Source of the DNA: Pocillopora damicornis
Taxonomy: Eukaryota
Assembly: GCF_003704095.1 (NCBI RefSeq)
Contig: NW_020846475.1
Location: forward strand, 558,001-622,000
DNA length: 64,000 nucleotides
Direction: 5' to 3'
Notes under the pieces: model-generated
What the model was told of the DNA's origin: nothing
Seen by the model: the letters and a program-made list of their open reading frames with translations, nothing else
The model's database searches: none
Shown here: piece after piece, positions 49,099-61,628 of the stretch
Layout of the letters: every line of letters starts with the position of its first letter
Numbering within the stretch: the first letter of the stretch is position 1
Program-made: the position numbers and the translations under genes

Positions 49099-52000
49099 AT
49101 GTGGCTTCTTTGTCTTTTTTGTTCAGTAATCCTCCTGTTCGCAGTTGAAACAGGTAATTTGGTATTTGTTAGAAAGACAGTCGAGCCGTCCCACACACCA
49201 TGCGTTCACTGCTTTTCGGCCGTGCTTTTGCAGTTATCAAATAAACGACTGATATAAATTGTTCATGAAACAAAACTGATCGGTGAAGGTAGCAAAGGAT
49301 TTATAGTCATTCATAAGTTGTTTTTTCGTTTACTTTGGTTTTTAAATATTTTCATTTAAAGCCGAGGGCACTAGAGGAAACCCTTAACTCTCCACGTTGC
49401 AGTGTTAAGGAAGTTCTGATAAGGGAACCATCTTAATCGTTCCACATCAAAAACTATTTTGTTTCAAAATCCAGTCACGAGGCTCTGCATAAGTTTATTA
49501 TTTTTTTGTAAGTTTTTTTTTTGATGATCTGTTGTCTGTTAAATTCTCCCTGATTGGTTGAGACCCTCATTCAAGTACCCGAATCTCGAATCCCAAATTG
49601 TGGCCCTGATGTATATATCTCTACGGCGTACAAAACAGAAGTCAGTAGGTGCGTGTGTATATGTTTTAAAGGTGTTTGAGACTTTCGGTAGTGCACGAGG
49701 GAAGAGGTATTTTTTGCGCGCTTGTGCTTGCTTGTGCTCACCAACGCTTGATGAAAAACGCAAAAAAGCCATATTCCTGTTTGAATTTAGACACTACCGC
49801 CACTTCCTCTGTTGAGCCATTGTGTCTTGCATCAGCGGAGTCCACCCGAAGTGGTCTTGCCACCATCCTGGATAAAGTGAAACGTGTCTACTTCCAACAG
49901 CTTCACCCAGAGACGATTCACGAGATGAGTCCGAAATCACCCGAAAATATCCGAAAGTATTTTCAGCCTTACGATCCCAGCCCAAATGCTATCAAGGGAA
50001 GAACTGATGAAGCCATGAAGTTATATCGAGAGCTAAAGGCTTTAAAAATCAATAAAAAGTTGTTGAAGCTGAGAGAGCGTAAGGCTGTTCATATGGCCAG
50101 TGCCATTTTGTTGAATAACTACGGCTGGAATCCATACAACCAGGACTACTACGCTGGGGAATGGCTTTCAGGACCAAACCTGCTCTGCTGGGAGCCTGTT
50201 TGTAGCGTGTTTCCAAACCTAAATGGCGTTTTGCCTCATTTCAAACCAAAAAATGTGGCCGATTTAGAAACATTGAAGGGACTTATCGAAAAATACAGTC
50301 TAATATTTGACAGGTACGTGGAGAATTGGAAACTTGGAGTCCGCACAGGATATGTAAGAACCTACAAAGCATGTAAAGTGGGTGTACATGTTCTCAAGAA
50401 CCAAAAATATAAAGGAATGGAAACAGAGCAAGGTTTGTATCGGCTCACTACTTTGTATCACCGAAACCACTGAAACAAATAATGCTGCGCCCGATTACTA
50501 ATTCTAGTTTAGAAGATAAGTCGTGACTACCCTTTGAGTCAGACTGGCACTGTCCATTTTATATTTTACATTTATAGGTAAAAAAGTACCCTTCTAAAAT
50601 GATGATAATAAAAATGCTTCCTTTTTTCATATGCCCTCAGTCAGTAGATCTAACTAAACGCTTTAGTTTATATTACTGCTCAGGAATTCTCTTCGGGGAA
50701 TTGGTGTAAATTTCGCAAAAGAAGTCCGCTGCGTTGAGTAAACAGCAAAAATATCACTTAATGGTTTCCTTTTTCTCCCGCACAAGGAATTTATGATCAG
50801 GAGTTTGCAAAGACTCTTCTGAAACCAGAATTCTTCGAAAGTCTCACAAAGGCCATGAAGGATACTTGGACGGCAAAGTACCAGAACACTGTAGAGGAAT
50901 ACTTCAAGCAGTCTATACTGCAGAACATCGGAATACCTGTTACTCGTATGATAAGGTAAAGGTTAAGGAACTATATACGGATCTTCCGGCCCTAGGCCAT
51001 GCACACAACTTCCTTGAAAACTTTAATTTGTTCTGTTATGCTGCTGCGCTCTGCTCTATACTCTTTCTATTCTCCTCATTCAGAGCACATGTCTCAATCC
51101 ATCTATTGCAAAGCTGAAATTAATCGCGACTTGGTTACTCGTGTTTTTCTCGTCTTTCGGGCAGTTCGGTTGTTCAGTCGTCGCCATTAGCTCCTTGGTA
51201 TAATTTCCCTTGTCCTGATTGGCTATTGTACCAAGTTACCTTTTCAGTTTTGTCTTTAAAAGACTCGCATGAAATTCCCTCCCGGGGCTAAAATATGGTA
51301 TATTTCATCCACTTGTGATCAACGATGTTAAATAGACACATTTCGCTGTGTTTCTAATTTCGCGATAGTTACCTTGAGAATGAATACTTATGTAACTGCC
51401 CCAATCAAGAGGAAGTGTTGAGTGGCTTGGGTAAACTTCCACTCCGTTACTTCATAAAGAAAGAGACTCTTCAAAAACTTCCCAACGGGCAGAGACTCAG
51501 CGGAGCCAGGACGTATCAGAGGCTCATGAGGTTCTTTACTACAATGGACGTTTCTCCGGCGCAGCTCAGGACTAAAGCTGTAGGGAGGCTATCCGAGCTG
51601 TATAGAAAGGTATGAAGGAAACGGGGCGGAAGGGGAGAGAGGAGTGGGACATATCTGAACAGACAAGCTGACGGACAGACTGGCTGATTGACACACAGAT
51701 GACTAAAAGCCTGACAAAGTGACAAACTGTAAGAATGACAGACCGATAGCCCGTAAAAGTCATAGACTGAAAGAATGAAAGACTGACAGTCTTACGGGTT
51801 GACAAAATGATGGATTGATACACTAAGCAAAATGACAAAATAATAGGAGGGCAGACCAACAGACCGAAGGACTGACTACTTGACTGACCGACAGATCGAC
51901 AAACTTGTAAATGGTCAACAGACTGTCGAACTCAAAGACTGACAGAATGTCAGATAGACAAACTCGAGAATTCACAGACAGACAAACCATCAGACCGACA

Positions 52001-54465
52001 TACTAACAAAACGACTCCGTGGCTGACAAAATGACAGATTGACAGTTTAAAATTTCATACTGGCAGACCGATGGATTGAAAACCAGATTGATCAACAATG
52101 TTAAACGGACACATTCATATATCAGATTTTATACATTGACAGCACTTACTAAACGGCCAATGATAATTACTTGTCTCAGTAATTAATGACTCCGTACCTG
52201 ACTGATTGCGGCTATTTTCGTTCTTTCTGCAGGTTGTCATTCTTGCGAAGTTGTACACCAAGGAACAGAATAAGAATACCGCTATCAACAAGTTAAAAAA
52301 AGTGTTGCGGAATCGTGATCAGTGGTTCAACAACCAGCCGTTTCCTAGCAGCGAGAGTGGTGAGGACGCCTTCGTTATGTGCCACGACACGGCGAGTGCG
52401 CAGGTTCATTGCCCCGAGAGATGGAAAGCCTTGCAATCGTGAATTAAAAATACTAACAGAGTGCGTAAAGCAACTGTTTATTTACCATTTGACGGCTTAA
52501 GACGTGTCTATTAACCAAGAAATTTTCATTTTTGTACGCCTGCGAAAATTTTGTAAACATGATACTGAAAGGTCAGGGGTCCTGTGGAAGATGATATTTG
52601 AACCGTGCAATTTCTGGTGCACACACTACTTAATTTAACTCGAAAATATAATTTGCACGTTATTTAGGAACTGAAGACTTTCCTCCAAAAGTCGCTAAAT
52701 GCGTCAGGTGTCAATAATTATTTATTCTTATTTATTAACCATTAAAATGAAAGGTACGTTGGCTCTCTCCGAGTCTGAGTCACCTGTTTCATTTAAAGAG
52801 ACAAGACGCGATAAAATCAAATTCACATTTTGTTTGACTGGATACACTAATACTTTAACAGAACAGTTCTTTACTTTCACCTTGTAATAATCATTGCTAT
52901 TGTAGGTCATGAAAACAAAAGTAAAGCCAGTCATTGACACACTCTTTTATAGTAGTGGTCGTAAGAAAACCGTCCCTGCCTGTTCCTTGGAGGTCACAGC
53001 AGATTTCCATCCTTTTGTCAGCTATCATGCCTACGGGGTCGGATCCAAGGATTGCACATCAAAGAGCACACAATATCTGCCATTTTTCATGGACAAGTTT
53101 GGTCCAAAATGGACGGAATATACCACAACAGCTCACGAACAACTTCCTGGACACCAACTGGAGGTTGGTGAAGTTCAGTTGGTGATTTGAGTAAATCTTT
53201 CAACAAAGTCTCTACCTTTTCTCTTTTAGAAAGATAAGATACACGACATGCCAAATTATTCTGTCCAGGTAAAATGTTTTTGACTAGACGCATACCTGAG
53301 TGTACTCAGGCGCTGGTAATGGTGAAATCTAGGCGCCGTTTTCATAGTAAACTACATTTGTTTCTTGTCTAAATTTTATTTGCATGCTTTTTTTTTTTTT
53401 TTTTTCAAAATTGAGATAAAACAAAACATCTGTTTGAAGAGGAAAGAGATGACTGATATCAACATTGATCTCAACTACCTAAAATCGATAGGTTCAGAGC
53501 TATGTCGAGTATTTTGAAGACAGCTGCGAAGATGCCATTCATTGGCTGGGAGCCTTCAACTACTTCCCAGGATTCACCGAAGGGTGGACAACTTACATTG
53601 AGTACGAGCTGCTGCCTCAAGACTCCAATCTTTATTCAGATACTTCAGACAAGGAGGTGTTGCTACAGAAGTACGGCATGATCTACTACCAGGTAATTAT
53701 GAAAACCCAGAAAGAGAGGTTCATAAATGAAGGGAGCTAAGCAAGATTCAGCAAAGTTGTGCCTCTAAGTTTGGAGGACTCTGAAGTCAGTCTTCCTGAG
53801 AAATATTGAAAACTTTGAATTGAGAAGGTGAATCCGAGCCATGTCATGAGTCCATGCGCTCTATTTGTTGAGGTTAAGAGATCAGCTTATTTCCCTACCA
53901 TGGTTTCAGACATATCTTTGAGAGAGATATCTTTGCTCATTCGTTAAGTTCCCATGCTCTATTCAAGAACTCTCTTACTCCGTCAAGAACTCCCTTAATC
54001 TGGCCCGGCGTACTAACTCGAACATCTTAAGACGGGAAATATTCTATTTACATTCCGTTAAAAAAAAAAAGTTTATGGGGCGTTTCTTTCGTTTGTCAAC
54101 AGATTTTAGCCGCCCTTCGCATTATTGTTGACATCGATCTAAACTATTACGACAAGACAACTTCTGATGCGCTGTATCTGTACAAGCTGTACGCCTGGGA
54201 AGACAATACAGACCTAGCACAAAAAGATATCTTGAGATCACAAGCCCTACCAGGATTTGTAGCCAGCTATGTGTTTGGTCAAATGGAAATCTCCCGTGTC
54301 AGGGGCATGGCCGAGAGAGGACTGGGGCGAGATTTCAACTTGAAAGATTTTCATTACGAGGTGTTACGCCTGGGAGAATATCCCTTAGGGTACTTAGAGG
54401 AACACATACGGGCCTATATTGCTTGTAAGAAAAACCCCGATCGCGATGAATGTAAAGAGTTTTAG
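49099..54465 (+). pseudogene. DUF885-family secreted putative metallopeptidase, copy A; one in-frame TGA (52440-52442), so pseudogene or null allele unless a sequencing error
   Basis: Exons 49099-49153 (signal peptide MWLLCLFCSVILLFA), 49791-50432, 50787-50955, 51369-51609, 52233-52460, 52906-53163, 53492-53692, 54103-54465. DUF885 motifs TAHEQLPGHQLE, FTEGWTTYIE, IVDIDL, PGFVASYVFGQMEI..R..AERGLGRDFNLKDFHYEVLRLGEYPL. Confidence 0.8.
51650..52110. repeat. Degenerate (GACA/GACT)n low-complexity repeat in an intron
   Basis: Dense GACAGA/GACTGAC units. Confidence 0.7.
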
Positions 54466-55898
54466 AAGACTAAGTTTGTAGTCTAATCTATGGATATTGT
54501 GTTCAAAGCGCAGTTCTGATTGAATGGGAATAAACAGCTAAAGGGCCTCATTAGGTCACGTTTCAATTTATTAAAGGCCTCTGACTAAACTAATTTAATT
54601 CGTCATTATCTTTGGGGGTTCAGAGTCACTGAGTAATTCCAGAAAACCTTTGATAATCTTCTACTTTTTGGAAACATACGGTTATTCCCCCAAGCTTACT
54701 GAAGGCCAAGAAACCAACATACCCCTGCCTTGAGGCACTGGCAAAAAAAGGTTCGCACTATTTTCTGTGCTGAATTAAATTCTCCAGAGAGATAATTCTT
54801 TTGTTAATTTTGAGACAGTACAAAACATGATACTGGGAGAAAAAAAAAATTTCAAAGTTTGCGTGAGAAAAAGATTAACACGCCAAATTACAACCTGCGA
54901 ATAATCTGAGTCTTAAAGATTGACATTGGAATTCTCCAACTGTTCAAGGTCTTTAATTTCACACGCACGAATGCATTTTGTCATCTGAAAATGCTCTCAA
55001 GAAGCCTTTTTCCTAGCCAAATCATCCCTCATAAAGTTCTATGAAAGCTGCAAACAATAAAGTCGAAAAAGAAATGAAAATTTGCTGGCTGTAGACATGT
55101 TGTCAGAATATCTTCTGCTCAACGTGAGAATATATTCTTACTAAACATAAACATTTTCCTTTTGATCGACGCCACTTTTCAAATGAAGTTATAAAAATCA
55201 TTGTGAATTTGATTGACAAAGCCGTGATGAATTTTGAGAAATTGAAGTAACGAACTTTTGGAGCCTGGAAGGATCGACATAAATGGTTTCCCACTGAGTA
55301 ACGCGCAGGTGTCAGTTGTTCATATGAATAAAAGATACCAAATATGGCAATTATGGAAATTCTTTCTCGAGTGGGCGAGGTTTGTGACTTCACTTAATCT
55401 TATAATCCACAATAGGCGAAAGAAGAATAAAGTTGACTCCATGGTATCTGGCTGGTGGCAAAGCATATTCTACAGTTGAAATGTTTTGGGACATTTGGAG
55501 CCGCTCGTATTGAAAGGTCAGTACAAGGTAGGGTGCCATTGACTATAATTTTGGTTAAGTAGTTTTTTGCGTCACCTTTTTAAGCATTTAAGTACCGAAT
55601 AAACTATCTCCTTAAGTGCGAATTGTTACACTAAGAACGGACAGTTTCTAAAATCATTCTAGACGTGACTGAAGTTGAGACGTATGGGGTTCATGGGGAA
55701 ATGATGGACAGTAACTGTCAAAAGAACGACGTTTAGTATTGATCCTAAATCAATTGTGATGCGCTTTATTGCAAATCCTGTCACAAGTCTCAGAAATTTT
55801 CATATAATTTTGCAACTTTGTGTAAAAGACATATAAATAGCACTAACCACAATGCTGATGCGTTTCTAATAAATTCGTAATTTTCTTTCAATTTACAG

Positions 55899-58800
55899 AT
55901 GAGGTTGACGATACAGCTTTTTCGCTTCCTTGGCTCAGCGATTCTCCTACTCGCTGTTTTGAAAGGTACAGTTCAACCTTTATTAAGCAGTCACTCTCAG
56001 TAAACAGCCAGATGATCGTTCAATTGCAGCTGCCTGATTAACAGAGGTTCACCATAATTTAAAGGGGCAAAAAGTCATCTCGCAACAAAATTAACAGGAC
56101 AATTTACACATCTTTGCTAAAAATTACAATAACTCGAGATATATCAAAGGTAATGAACAAGGAATGATCGCGCAATAAGCAGACCAGTAATTTTCTCGGT
56201 TGTAATTCAACAAGGTGGCCTTTTAATAGAGGAGAATTACGACAGAATCAAATATTTGTGTTATCCAAAAGGATGACCACTTCAAGGAGAGACCCTTTGA
56301 ATGTATATGGAAAGGATTTTTTTAAACGACCACAGGTCAAAGTTTTAGTTTTTTTATACGGACTTATCACTCAGATGCATTTACCACTTGTTGCAAAGCA
56401 GGTGAACCATTGATGTTAAAGATAATGAATAAGGGCTGACTATAGAAATGAAGGGTGTAACGTGGCAATCGCTATGCTCAGAGAGCATTTTGGCTTAGTT
56501 CCTCTGAGATAATCCTCTTTTATACTAAAAATTCTAAAATATACCTGAATATTTAAAAATAAAAGTGTTTTCACCATGATTGTTTTCTTCCATAGCATCA
56601 TTCGCTCTTCGATTTCCTCCACAAAAAGTACATGACAGCGATGGTAAGGTGACAGTCTTTTTGGACACCTTCTTATGTAATAAACTTTAAATATTCTCAA
56701 AGATGCAAATGAACACTTGGCGTACATGTACGCGGACGAGGATGGCTAGTGATTCCATTGATTATTTTTAACATAGTATCCGCAGTAAAAGCTAGAGTGA
56801 CAGTGTTATGTCGGGAGGAGCCCTGGAAATGGAGTTAAGAATTCTTCCCTCTTTCTGAAATATAAACATCCCGTATAATGCTTGAACGTGTCCTTTAGTA
56901 GCATGTCGTAATGATGTGGGATATTGATCAAATGAAGCCTTTAAGTGCTACTGTGGTTCTTTCTTTATTCACTCCGAGCTTTCGCCGTTCTACGACATCA
57001 TCAGGGAGGACGATAAAATATTTGCGCTATGGTTTTAAACGTTGGAGATGCCACTGTAAATTAGCAGTGATTAATTTAAGATTGTTTACAGTGGCACCTC
57101 CAACGTTTAAAACCATAGCGCAAATATTTTATCGTCCTCTCTGATGATGCCGTAGAACGGCGAAAGCTCGGAGTGAATAAAGAAAGAACCACAGTAGCAC
57201 TTAAAGGCGTCATTTGATCAATATCCCATCCCGTATAATCTTTATTGTTTACTGAAGCTGCTTATATAGTTTTATCAGCATGAATAATTCCATTTCTTGG
57301 ATATACTAACGATGTGATTCTTCTGTTTTCTCCAGAAACTTCTTCAGACGCGTCCTTATGTCAATCATCATCTGAGGCCACGCGCTCCCAACTCACAGAA
57401 TTGTTAGCCGAGATACAACAAACCTTTTTCTATCAGCTTCACCCAGAGCATATTGCCAGGATGGCTGAGGTAACACCCGAACTAATCAGAGAGCATTTCC
57501 AACCCTTCGATCCAAGTCCGGATGCCATTAAACGCAGAACCGACAAGGCCTTAGAACTACGTCGGAGACTCAACACTTTGCAAATCGACACAAAGAAGTT
57601 AAAGCTGAGAGAGCGTAAAGCCATTCATGTGGCTAGTGATGTTCTGTTAGCCCAGGGATGGGATCCGTACGGCATGAATTATTACTCTGGAGATTGGCTT
57701 TTGGGACCGAACTTATTTTGCTGGCAACCTGTTTGTCAGGTGTTCGGAAATTTGAACAGTGTTTTTTCTCACTTTAAACCGGACAATATGGACAAGTTAG
57801 AGAGACTGAAGACCCTTTTCGAGCAGTACCATCAAGTATTTGAAAGATACGTGGAGAACTGGAAACTTGGAGCGCGTTCAGGGTATCTGAGGCCTTTTAA
57901 AGCTTGTAAAGCGGCCGTATTCGCTGTGAAATACAAGAAATATAGAGAAATGGCGATAAATGGTGAATCAGGTTAGTGAAAAGTCACTTCATGATTATCT
58001 TTTATAAGAAAAGCAAACCATTTCCTTATAATGCCAGCGCTAGATCTTTTTCGAAATTACCAATGTTATAAACAAACTAGAATAAATATTGGCTCATAAG
58101 AAACTACTATTTTGACTTTGTGTTCTTTGCGCTGCCACCCCAGCTAAGTAATGTGCCTCTCGTTTCATATGGACTCGTTACAGGTACTGTTGAGCTGACT
58201 AACGAGCAAGTCGTTAAGATTTTCTTTTCCCACAAACCCACAGTCATTGACACAGTTCTTGATTGCACAATCGATTCTTAGTTAGAGAACTGAATCCCTC
58301 TAAAAGTTATCATCCGTCAAGAATTCTGGTTGTTGCACTTCATACTGATCAATCTTCTTTACATTTTCTCCTCTGAAAGGAATATACAAGCAACCGTTTG
58401 CCAACATTCTTTTAAATTCTGGCTTCTTCGCCAGCCTCTCCAAGTCTGTGAACGATACTTGGGAGGAGAAACACCAAGAGAATGTCAAGGAGTTTTTCAA
58501 ACAGTCTCTTGAAAACAACATTGCAAAGCCCGTTGTGAGAATGCTAAGGTACCTGACGACATGTTTTTACGCTTTTTACATATTGGAGACAATTTATAAC
58601 TAATCCGCCATTCTCATGGTTTTTTCATGAAATAAATTTCTTGAAAACCAAGCGAAAATATGAGCCGCAATTTAAGCAACTGACAGAAAAGAGGCCTGAA
58701 AAAAATTCAGGCTCCGACGGGATTTGAGCCCGTACTTCCCAGGTACTAGCTGGGGAACTTCTACAACTGAGCTACAAAGCCATACAGATTCCTTTACGGC

Positions 58801-61628
58801 AAAGAAAAACCCTTTCATGATTCTAACATGTGGCTTCATTGCCCAGTTGGCAGGCGNNNNNNNNNNNNNNNNNNNNNNNNNNNNNNNNNNNNNNNNNNNN
58901 NNNNNNNNNNNNNNNNNNNNNNNNNNNNNNNNNNNNNNNNNNNNNNNNNNNNNNNNATACTGAAGAACAGCAAGAGCACGTCGCTGTCGATAAGTTCAAA
59001 GAAATTCTCGGAAATTCTAACATGTGGTTTAACAGTAGGACTTTTCCTACCAGCGAGAGCGACGAAGATGCTTTTATAAAGTGTAGTGACTCAGAAAGTG
59101 CGGAGGAATTCTGCCCCAAGCGCTGGGAAGCTATGCAAAAATGGATGGAGAACACCAAAGACGTACGTTATGAAAAACCAATAAACTCCTCCCTGGCTAA
59201 AAGATATCCTATCTTTCTAACTCGGTATAAACCAGTACATCCGTTGGAACAAATTTATCCACTTTTGGTTCACGAGGCCAGTTTTTTCGTTATGAGATTT
59301 TTCGACTTGCGCCTTTTTCCAACTATGTCAAGGGTAAAAAGTTAAAATTTCAAACTTGAATCCTCAGAATTACCTGATCATTATTCATATTTCGGAAAGA
59401 AATCTGTTAAACAAGGAATGCTATTGTCCCACGCTCGTGTAGGGTTTGTGCGAGCAGGCTAATCGAAATGTGATCACCACAACAAAGCGTGAATGGGCAA
59501 CATGGCTCATCAAAAAGTCGTGGCCACTTAGCTTAAGTAACCATAAATGAGCTGGGCCCAGTTGTATAAAGGCCGGATAATGCTATATATCCAACGGATA
59601 AATCACTATACAGCGGATAAGTGATGGCAAAACGTGTAGCGTCATCCATCGGATAGAGATTTATCATGGCTGTGGATAGCGTTATCTGATCTTCGAACAA
59701 CCAGGGCCTGGAATAGATTCTAGGGTATGCTGTAGACCTGTAACTGCCTTTATATTGCAGACCATGACGAACCACATCACACCAGTCCTCGCAGCCAACT
59801 TTCACAGCAGTGGGCCCAAGAAAACTATTCCTGTTTGTGGGGTAGACCTTTATGCATCGTTCCAGCCTTATGCTAGTTATCATTCTTACGGTATAGGAGC
59901 AAAGGACTGCTCATATAAAGGAAGCCAGGCGCTACCGTTTTTTATGGACCGATTTGGCCCAAAATGGACGGAATATACCACCACAGCTCATGAGCAAATG
60001 CCCGGGCATCATTTGGAGGTTAGTGACTTTCGTTGAATCTTGACGGTGTTATGTTTAACTTTGTTTGGTAAATAGTTAGGCAAATCCCAAGAAGCATCGA
60101 AACACCAGTGCTGGTGAAATTAGAAGACAGAGGAGAGAAATGAGATTGAAAACCCATGTTCAGCTGTTTCCTCTTTCTGAGGCCTTTACACCGTGACTAT
60201 AGCTAGAAAGACGCTTCTCGGGTTTACACAACAAGGGAACTTTGATAGTTGCACTTATTAAGGTGGCTTACTCTTACTTGTAATGATGCGAAGTAAACTA
60301 CGGTCATCAGACCAATTGGTTAGTAAAAGAAAGTTAAGCGCATATTGGGCTAGGTTGTTAGCCGCTGTTCGGGAATATGAGCCCGCGCTAATGTTACACT
60401 ATTTACCTTTGCAGGTTCAGAGTTACACGGAATATTTTCAGGACAGTTGCAAAGATCCCATTCACTGGTTGGGAGCCTACAATTATTTTCCAGGGTTTAC
60501 CGAAGGCTGGACGACTTACACTGAGTACCAACTGCTGCCTCAAGACACGAACCTTTACTCAGACACTTCCAACAAGGAGGTGTTGCTACAGAAATACGGC
60601 ATGATCTACTACCAGGTAATTATGTGCAAACGAAACAAGGGGCTGTAAAGCGAGGTGCTGCAAAAATCGATGTCATTTTGTAAAGCCAACTAATATGTGT
60701 AAACGTTCAGATCAATCGTTGATATTTCGTGTAAGTACACGAGGGACGAGAAAGACGAGGTACCTGTTAGCTTTTTTTCTAGGTTCGCATTAAGGCTGAA
60801 GTAAATTGTGAGAAGGAGAGACCAATGGGATAGGAGTTTCACCTGCAAAGGTTGATTGTCATTCGGACACAGACATATGCATAAGATCGACCACACAAGC
60901 CAACGTATAGCCTATTCCAAGCTTGCAGCTAGTAAAACGGAGCGAAATAGAAAACAGCGACAGAGTGAAGAAGAGGGGGGTTCGGGCGACCCGACCCAGA
61001 CCTCCATCTTTTTTTCACTCCCTCGCTACTGGATCCTACTATCGCACCGTTTATTGTTACACTTCGTTTTACTAACTGAAAGCCCGGAACAGGTTAGCTA
61101 ACGGAATAACACTTGGATCATCATTTTATTTGTCGTTTACGATAGCTTCCAATTAAAATGTTAGTGATTCTACACCTCTCTGCACCGAATGATTGGCAAA
61201 GTCTCGTTAGGTCGCTACAATTTTTACTTGTTATTAATAAAATACTTTGTTGTTTTATTGCACAGCTCTTAGCCGCTCTGCGCGCTGTTGTAGACATTGA
61301 CCTAAACTATTATCAGAAGTCAGCATTCGATGCCCTCCGTATGTACAAACAGTATGTCTGGGAGGACAACACGGACCAGGCAAAGAAAGATATCATAAGG
61401 TCAGAAGGTTTGCCGGGACAGGTAGCCAGCTACGTGTCTGGTCAACTGGAAATCTCTCGCCTCAGGAGTTTAGCCGAGAGGGAGCTGGGTCAAGATTTCG
61501 ATCTGAAGGATTTTCATTACGAGGTATTACGTCAGGGGGAGATACCGTTGAGATACTTGGATGAACACATAAAAGCTTATATCGCCTGTAAGAAAAACCC
61601 GTCTCTCGAGGAATGTGGAGAATTTTAA
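55899..61628 (+). CDS. DUF885-family secreted putative metallopeptidase, copy B (exon 4 hidden in a gap)
   Basis: Exons 55899-55965 (signal peptide), 57336-57971, 58380-58548, [gap], to 59162, 59761-60018, 60415-60615, 61266-61628. Visible intron positions and phases match copy A. Motifs TAHEQMPGHHLE, FTEGWTTYTE, PGQVASYVSGQLEISRLR..AERELGQDFDLKDFHYEVLRQGEIPL. Confidence 0.88.
56917..57228. repeat. Long near-perfect inverted repeat (144-bp arms, 24-nt spacer)
   Basis: Arm 56917-57060 is the reverse complement of 57085-57228, with 4 mismatches counted by eye. Confidence 0.95.
58660..58856 (-). mobile_element. tRNA-derived SINE-like repeat running into the gap
   Basis: Minus strand GTAGCTCAGTTGTAGAAG...GGGCTCAAATCCCG (A/B-box-like). 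A related degenerate copy lies at ~42510-42650. Confidence 0.5.
58857..58956. other. Assembly gap (100 N) hiding DUF885-B exon 4 and the start of exon 5
   Basis: Run of N; the corresponding exon is present in copy A. Confidence 0.95.
59555..59708. mobile_element. Harbinger-like MITE with internal GGATA repeats
   Basis: Ends GGCCCAGTTGT / ACAACCAGGGCC; sibling at 39553. Confidence 0.65.

Follow-up and report, generated by a model that had tools for sequence, protein, structure and literature searches.

Could genes of a family that Pfam names as bacterial form a working tandem pair in the nuclear genome of a coral, and what would their products do? This question is raised by a stretch of 64,000 nucleotides from Pocillopora damicornis (the window, numbered from its first letter), in which positions 49099-61628 of the + strand carry two head-to-tail paralogues with GT-AG introns, copy A followed by copy B, whose translations belong to the family DUF885. 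Judging from the sequences and from the structure model of a relative, we put at roughly 0.6 the probability that A and B are tandem eight-exon coral DUF885 genes encoding extracytoplasmic, two-lobed zinc peptidases of the gluzincin type, of which A would be broken and B probably working.

The first-pass annotation, made from the letters alone, had described a tandem pair with eight exons in copy A and the same exon structure in both copies where visible, and the two + strand paralogues were indeed found at these positions. All introns of copy A are GT..AG with consistent phases, and its exons sum to 2157 bases, that is, 719 codons including the stop (Table 1). The forward-frame open segments of A and B match pair by pair, with exon identities of 67-85% at the DNA level and introns that cannot be aligned, and therefore the local duplication is old. 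An orthologous tandem pair is also present in the sister species Pocillopora meandrina, where it adjoins a WD40 gene on a 5.8 Mb contig (locus L018:6001-19097, a sequence free of N runs).

Copies A and B are animal nuclear genes which are already in the databases, though poorly modelled. The GenBank protein RMX39595.1 (pdam_00004022, here P0151) corresponds exactly to exons of the window, but fuses A and B into 1279 residues, and a fused A+B model exists in P. meandrina as well. Both fused models omit exon 4 of B, so that exon 3 runs straight into the middle of exon 5. RefSeq gives copy A in two pieces, XP_027051601.1 (P0170, 433 residues) and XP_027051654.1 (P0169, 272 residues), broken at a premature stop codon. 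All three are P. damicornis entries identical to exons of the window. That the locus is mis-annotated, with the pair fused in GenBank and copy A cut at the stop in RefSeq, is of practical value to users of these models. Note that the whole-protein steps below were based on P0151, P0169, P0170 and a relative, P0002, and that the exons of A and B were searched singly and unspliced.

Assignment to DUF885, at first made from motifs, was borne out by the Pfam search, in which both the exon translations and the deposited models match PF05960 (DUF885, clan Peptidase_MA; curated gathering score 32.4 bits). The scores of P0151, P0169 and P0170 are 347.8, 128.6 and 39.2 bits, respectively, all above the gathering score, and among the single exons the best matches were obtained for exon 8 of B (89.1 bits) and exon 8 of A (51.3 bits), followed by weaker ones for exons 6 and 2. 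The Pfam models of M32, M3 and M2 gave no match at E up to 0.01, PF05960 alone being reported, and nothing was found in the NCBIfam search. A family profile search reached the PDB entry 3o0y at 1e-148, and also 3iuk and 3u24. According to one survey (PMC4539273), a certain class of zinc sites in solved structures has annotations specific to it, and IPR010281 is listed as one of them.

The HE-x-x-PGH and EGW motifs and the C-terminal signature named in the first-pass annotation are seen in both copies. The former reads HEQLPGHQ in A and HEQMPGHH in B, EGW occurs in both, in the form EGWxxY about 39 residues after HExxPGHH, and the C-terminal R..D, RY..PGQ..SY and FH motifs follow. In a 58-row alignment, the near-invariant columns are H563, E564, P567, G568, H569, H570, E602, G603, W604, Y607, R645, D649, R684 and Y695 (P0002 numbering), all of which are kept in B, and all in A except that Gln stands for H570. 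The two His and the Glu of the first motif and the Glu of EGW are conserved in at least 56 of the 58 sequences, which range over rows taken as bacterial, bilaterians and cnidarians. The conserved Glu of EGW lies 39 residues downstream of the first His, as counted in the alignment.

The fold was examined on the AlphaFold (AF2) model of P0002, which is 61% identical to A and 56% to the fused model and stands here in place of A or B. The predicted local distance difference test score (pLDDT) of this model is 93.2, and it has a membrane helix at residues 25-50. The bacterial DUF885 structures 3o0y, 3iuk and 3u24 match it with Z scores of 34.6, 28.5 and 26.9, respectively, over 516-564 residues. 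They are followed by the microtubule-associated tyrosine carboxypeptidase MATCAP (PDB 7z5g; Z 13.3 over 256 residues), the best structural match outside DUF885, the M32 carboxypeptidase BsuCP (Z 12.5), oligoendopeptidase F (Z 11.7), neurolysin (Z 10.2) and ACE (Z about 9). Since the matches beyond the DUF885 entries all point to a two-lobed gluzincin oligopeptidase or carboxypeptidase, we infer a zinc peptidase. The metal and catalytic site would be formed by the His and Glu of HExxPGH, the His after Pro-Gly and the Glu of EGW some 39 residues further on, and it would be set in the cleft between the two helical lobes. In the P0002 model, one helix ends at HE and the next begins at HH. Such a two-lobed cleft architecture suggests short peptides as substrates, most likely for a carboxy- or oligopeptidase, and an extracytoplasmic zinc carboxy- or oligopeptidase is the likely function on the basis of the model.

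How close are these proteins to the known systems? The bacterial DUF885 lipoproteins of Colwellia (3o0y), Arthrobacter (3iuk) and Shewanella (3u24) are alike in family, HExxPGHH, EGW and fold (Z 27-35 with P0002), but the identity over the structure is 14-16%, and the coral proteins have extra inserts and are encoded by intron-bearing genes. Other sampled bacterial DUF885 sequences, apart from these PDB entries, contain a single Cys. MATCAP is counted among the gluzincins, and its His-Glu...His motif is non-canonical and lengthened. However, it belongs to another Pfam family, is cytosolic, is 11% identical and is matched over the catalytic lobe only. The M32 enzymes (BsuCP 3hq2, Pyrococcus 1k9x, T. 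cruzi 3dwc) and the M3 and M2 enzymes (oligoendopeptidase F, Pz peptidase A, neurolysin and ACE) share the two-lobed helical architecture and the placing of the site in a cleft (Z 9-12.5 over 330-377 residues). They also have a Glu as third ligand downstream of the His motif, for which the Glu of EGW is the candidate in the coral proteins, but they carry the canonical HExxH, unlike the coral proteins, and are 9-13% identical.

Then, are both copies intact? In exon 5 of copy A, the window reads TCG TGA ATT (preceded by CAA), whereas the P. meandrina locus L018 reads TCG TGG ATT, a single G/A difference, and Trp is found at this position in copy B and in the relatives examined. The nonsense codon has no counterpart in the sister species. 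As assembled, copy A stops after 438 residues, upstream of the half with HExxPGH and EGW. Since the nonsense codon precedes the catalytic half, copy A is probably non-functional in the sequenced individual or haplotype. The RefSeq protein XP_027051601.1 terminates at the TGA codon, and the GenBank model dodges it by an upstream donor, losing the conserved CPxRW segment. Two splicings that avoid the TGA, one with donor 52438 and acceptor 52953 and the other with the GenBank donor 52403, were considered and not adopted, because each deletes conserved residues (the CPxRW segment or the next helix) and the sister species uses the ancestral donor.

The RNA contigs considered here concern copy A only, come mostly from related strains at 95-99% identity and support two junctions. 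Contig X11 crosses the GT..AG intron from 51609 to 52233, that is, the exon 4/5 junction, and the poly-A contig X1 carries the exon 7/8 junction, its loose letters ATCTACTAC, nine letters from the end of exon 7, standing before position 54100. In comparison with P. meandrina, the ratio of nonsynonymous to synonymous differences (pN/pS) is 0.25 for A and 0.06 for B, and the amino-acid divergence of A is about twice that of B. Both copies are under purifying selection. The two ratios suggest that both were constrained until recently, B more strongly, and since copy A has one disabling change together with a pN/pS of 0.25, its loss would be recent, allelic or a base-call error.

For copy B, every assembled exon is open and all the conserved residues are kept, but an assembly gap interrupts the gene, and the assembled letters contain no exon 4. 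With exon 3 ending at 58548, the letters up to 58856 belong to intron 3, and comparison with A places the right edge of the gap inside exon 5, about 8 codons in. In the P. meandrina locus L018, an open reading frame (ORF) 60% identical to exon 4 of A lies between exons 3 and 5 of B. The interval between these two exons is about 2.07 kb in P. meandrina, whereas in the window it consists of 310 sequenced bases and 100 N. Consequently, about 1.75 kb is missing, the flanks of the gap are discontinuous, and ORFs running across the N run are artefacts. The gap takes out an exon, and any frame read across it is therefore false. Copy B is probably the working gene, though its exon 4 is unread.

Where would the products act? 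Their closest known counterparts are the membrane-anchored DUF885 proteins of anthozoans (Oculina patagonica LOC144667449, an Acropora muricata protein, and Nematostella vectensis LOC5504853 and A7RSD2), which have the clade, the Cys pattern, the motifs and presumably the fold in common with A and B, and the closest of which are about 56-64% identical to A and B. These proteins have 760-830 residues and 6-15 N-glycosylation sequons, and their N-terminal part comprises a tail and a membrane helix. In A and B, by contrast, the anchor is missing, sequons are nearly absent, and a separate signal-peptide exon is predicted. Among the sampled cnidarian relatives, most begin with a strongly hydrophobic stretch and contain 9-18 Cys. 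The two copies contain 13 and 11 Cys, compared with 14 in the closest relatives, in line with the secreted type of Cys content claimed for them at the outset. In each copy there is one ATG-led hydrophobic mini-exon, whose consensus phase-1 donor fits the acceptor of exon 2, and the two encoded peptides are alike. Since the ORF of B exon 2 has no ATG 5' of the conserved region, an upstream start exon is needed. Based on these predicted exons, A and B appear to have exchanged the ancestral N-terminal membrane anchor (read as type II) for a short signal-peptide exon, and their products would accordingly be soluble and secreted. In addition, an ORF at 49670-49790, 5' of the acceptor of A exon 2, has retained a juxtamembrane stretch with KKPY and a short piece of hydrophobic sequence, both of which can be aligned to the membrane anchor of the Oculina relative. 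It may be the relic of an ancestral single-exon N-terminus, and from this stretch A and B seem to have descended from a membrane-anchored ancestor.

The pair is not alone. A PF05960 search of the 234.35 Mb P. damicornis assembly gave 71 exon matches, including about 30 C-terminal exons, and about 10 of these roughly 30 loci have in-frame stops, so DUF885 in this genome is a large, partly decaying family expansion. The paralogues that were read are multi-exon, and the only two with a readable 5' exon (L013 and L015) carry an N-terminal hydrophobic stretch resembling a membrane anchor. An intronless full-length paralogue was also sought in the same genome, but the long open frames proved to be multi-exon genes or N runs. 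The view that A and B form a special, undescribed extracellular system was given up. They make up two of the family's roughly 30 loci in this genome, and their secretion and proteolysis are what we infer from predicted exons and the model. As a separate observation, an array of at least 14 DUF885 C-terminal exons occurs at 358-455 kb of contig C788, and further loci are found on C2784, C2502, C1390 and C1708.

How were these genes acquired? With exon 8 of B as query, the representatives search returned 2898 clusters (50% identity) at E up to 0.001. The named top matches are cnidarian (Nematostella, Exaiptasia, Actinia, Acropora, Oculina and Pocillopora), and mollusc and bacterial matches come next, at about 1e-11. 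With the deep-branching relative P0091 as query, one match was obtained, and the ESM Atlas contains a 211-member all-eukaryote DUF885 cluster with Cnidaria as the commonest phylum. In a tree of 59 rows, where the "bacterial" rows are mostly metagenome or genome proteins and were treated as such partly because of a few names (Collimonas, Sphingomonadales), the cnidarian rows group in a single clade (support 100) on a long stem. Within it A and B are sisters (99 in the Shimodaira-Hasegawa-like approximate likelihood ratio test, SH-aLRT), beside an Oculina protein and near Acropora proteins, as expected from the local duplication that had been suggested. A and B are members of an anthozoan-wide, strongly diverged and expanded DUF885 clade.

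In the same free tree, a bilaterian clade (support 100) lies apart from the cnidarians and amid rows taken as bacterial, with two branches of 95 in front of it. This second animal group comprises proteins of molluscs, Owenia, Lineus, Limulus and a shrimp (P0076, P0149, P0261 and others). The bilaterian members, among which is also a 599-residue spider venom protein (PMC7682650), belong to the same family, and the examples examined have a hydrophobic, signal-peptide-like N-terminus. Their identity to bacterial proteins is about 35%, but to the coral clade only about 18-20%. However, a tree with all animals together (29-row subset) is 3.65 log-likelihood units worse, with p 0.346 in the approximately unbiased (AU) test, and a single animal clade is not rejected. 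The tree is compatible with old transfer as well as with vertical descent and patchy retention, and with one animal origin as well as two. For comparison, Dictyostelium DUF885 appears on a list of candidates for transfer from bacteria (PMC3188802).

A broader and rather speculative scenario may be sketched, to which we give little credence at present. The anthozoan DUF885 proteins would constitute a large undescribed family of cell-surface or secreted zinc carboxy- or oligopeptidases with a split HExxPGHH, about 30 loci in Pocillopora, mostly anchored (read as type II), and A and B as soluble offshoots. It would have entered cnidarians, or diverged in them, independently of the bacterial-like mollusc, nemertean and chelicerate genes, implying two bacterial-to-animal acquisitions.

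Several points weigh against a working secreted peptidase. The canonical HExxH on a single helix is not found, the motif being HExxPGH with two extra residues. Copy A has Gln in place of the second His of HH, the matches to characterised peptidases (Z 10-13) are in the weak range for helical folds, and enzymatic activity of any DUF885 protein was not found in the literature searched. Could A and B then be pseudoenzymes, with a zinc-peptidase fold and a role as extracellular binding or scaffold proteins? The split non-canonical motif, the lost His and the missing record of activity would be in accordance with this, as would a bacterial DUF885 protein pulled down as a vitronectin binder (PMC10281475). 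However, the two His, the Glu between them and the Glu of EGW are conserved to a degree typical of a working catalytic site, and MATCAP, the top match beyond the DUF885 entries, is an active carboxypeptidase. Consequently, we consider pseudoenzymes improbable. It is similarly improbable that the whole pair is decaying, copy A being a pseudogene and copy B perhaps one too, with a locus that has no present function in P. damicornis. The TGA in exon 5, the larger divergence of A and the in-frame stops in about a third of the family loci would fit such a decay, and the RNA contigs on copy A are thin, mostly intronic or unspliced, and uninformative on intron 1 and expression level. Against it stand the pN/pS of 0.06 and the open exons with complete conserved residues in B, the single disabling change in A at a pN/pS of 0.25, and the fact that both copies are open in P. 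meandrina, including the exon-4-like ORF in B.

The extracytoplasmic location has its own difficulties. The RefSeq and GenBank models omit both signal-peptide exons and start copy A at an internal ATG (MKNAKK), without a signal peptide, and the RNA contigs over copy A contain no junction for its signal-peptide exon, that is, none over intron 1. The signal peptides named in the first-pass annotation thus stand as phase-compatible predicted exons in both copies. Moreover, sequons number 0 in A and 1 in B, compared with 9-15 in the five closest relatives, and a different compartment is conceivable. In A+B (P0151) there is 1 sequon in 1275 residues, whereas shuffled sequences have 6.4 on average (P 0.008). 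A loss of the anchor followed by translation from the internal ATG would leave A and B as intracellular proteins without secretion, which we regard as doubtful. Copy B does not fit this well, as its exon 2 has no ATG 5' of the conserved N-terminal region and an upstream exon is required. Similar ATG-led hydrophobic mini-exons with phase-matched consensus donors are present in both copies, which also retain 11-13 Cys as known from the ectodomain relatives. In addition, drift would leave the sequons at chance level and not under it, so the number below chance is not the outcome of simple drift after anchor loss. As for bacterial contamination or a very recent bacterial transfer, the bacterial family name in Pfam and the bacterial proteins scoring near the mollusc ones on the C-terminal exon could be taken in its favor. 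However, each gene has seven GT-AG introns and the same G+C content as the rest of the window, the tandem pair is kept beside the WD40 gene in P. meandrina, about 30 paralogues bear introns, and the cnidarian clade has a long stem. Intron structure and synteny rule this out, and we give it practically no weight. Recent horizontal transfer was not claimed in the first place, and the introns, the animal neighbours, the orthologous pair and the relatives in Acropora, Oculina, Nematostella, Actinia and Exaiptasia all agree with that caution. We prefer to regard A and B as coral genes for putative extracytoplasmic zinc peptidases, with B as the probable working copy.

The possible interest of such genes goes beyond the locus. 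DUF885 is a large family, as shown by the 2898 clusters matched by one exon, and is found in animal venoms and venom glands. For example, a DUF885 protein is abundant in the venom proteome of a pholcid spider, where M32-like folds were noted (PMC7682650), and another occurs in the venom-gland set of the gastropod Raphitoma (PMC11359391). Corals carry an expanded, diverged and mostly membrane-anchored branch of this family. If its members are active ectopeptidases, they could be among the proteins that process peptides on the coral surface, in the gut cavity or where coral and symbiont meet.

Table 1. Features of copies A and B in the window, with the evidence for each.
Feature	Position	Strand	Evidence
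A exon 1 (predicted)	49099..49153	+	ATG and hydrophobic signal-peptide-like stretch; phase-1 donor CAG|gtaatt; resembles B exon 1, phase fits exon 2
A exon 2, N-terminal lobe	49791..50432	+	ORF and splice sites; within deposited models matching DUF885
A exon 3	50787..50955	+	Splice sites; protein 100% identical to P. meandrina locus
A exon 4	51369..51609	+	Splice sites; splicing from 51609 to 52233 seen in an RNA contig (run X11)
A exon 5	52233..52460	+	Ancestral donor AGA|gtgcgt; X11 RNA contig covers 52231-52461
In-frame TGA in A exon 5	52440..52442	+	Position of conserved Trp codon
A exon 6	52906..53163	+	Ends HEQLPGHQLE; Pfam DUF885 positions 300-378; splice sites
A exon 7	53492..53692	+	EGW motif; splice sites
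A exon 8 and stop codon	54103..54465	+	DUF885 C-terminal signature; Pfam 51.3 bits on tested part
B exon 1 (predicted)	55899..55965	+	ATG and signal-peptide-like stretch; phase-1 donor AAG|gtacag; sole non-hairpin candidate in 54470-57330
B exon 2	57336..57962	+	Pfam DUF885 positions 18-141, E 7e-4; splice sites
B exon 3	58380..58548	+	Splice sites; phase-2 end as in A exon 3
Assembly gap	58857..58956	.	Takes out B from within intron 3 to the first codons of exon 5, with all of exon 4 and intron 4; about 1.75 kb missing
B exon 5, 3' part	58959..59162	+	Read from the first complete codon 3' of the gap; alignment to A exon 5 begins near codon 9 of the latter; donor GAC|gtacgt
B exon 6	59761..60018	+	Ends HEQMPGHHLE; Pfam DUF885 positions 298-377; aligns with 3iuk HEGVPGHHLQ
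B exon 7	60415..60615	+	EGW motif; splice sites
B exon 8 and stop codon	61266..61628	+	Pfam 89.1 bits; PDB 3o0y at E 2e-7; query for representatives search

We also found an inverted repeat in intron 1 of B, at 56867-57239. Its 144-nt arms (56917-57060 and 57085-57228) are 97% complementary and 24 nt apart, and a perfect 13-nt direct repeat is present on both sides (56867-56879 and 57227-57239). From its sequence, it looks like a small foldback insertion or one of the miniature inverted-repeat transposable element (MITE) type.

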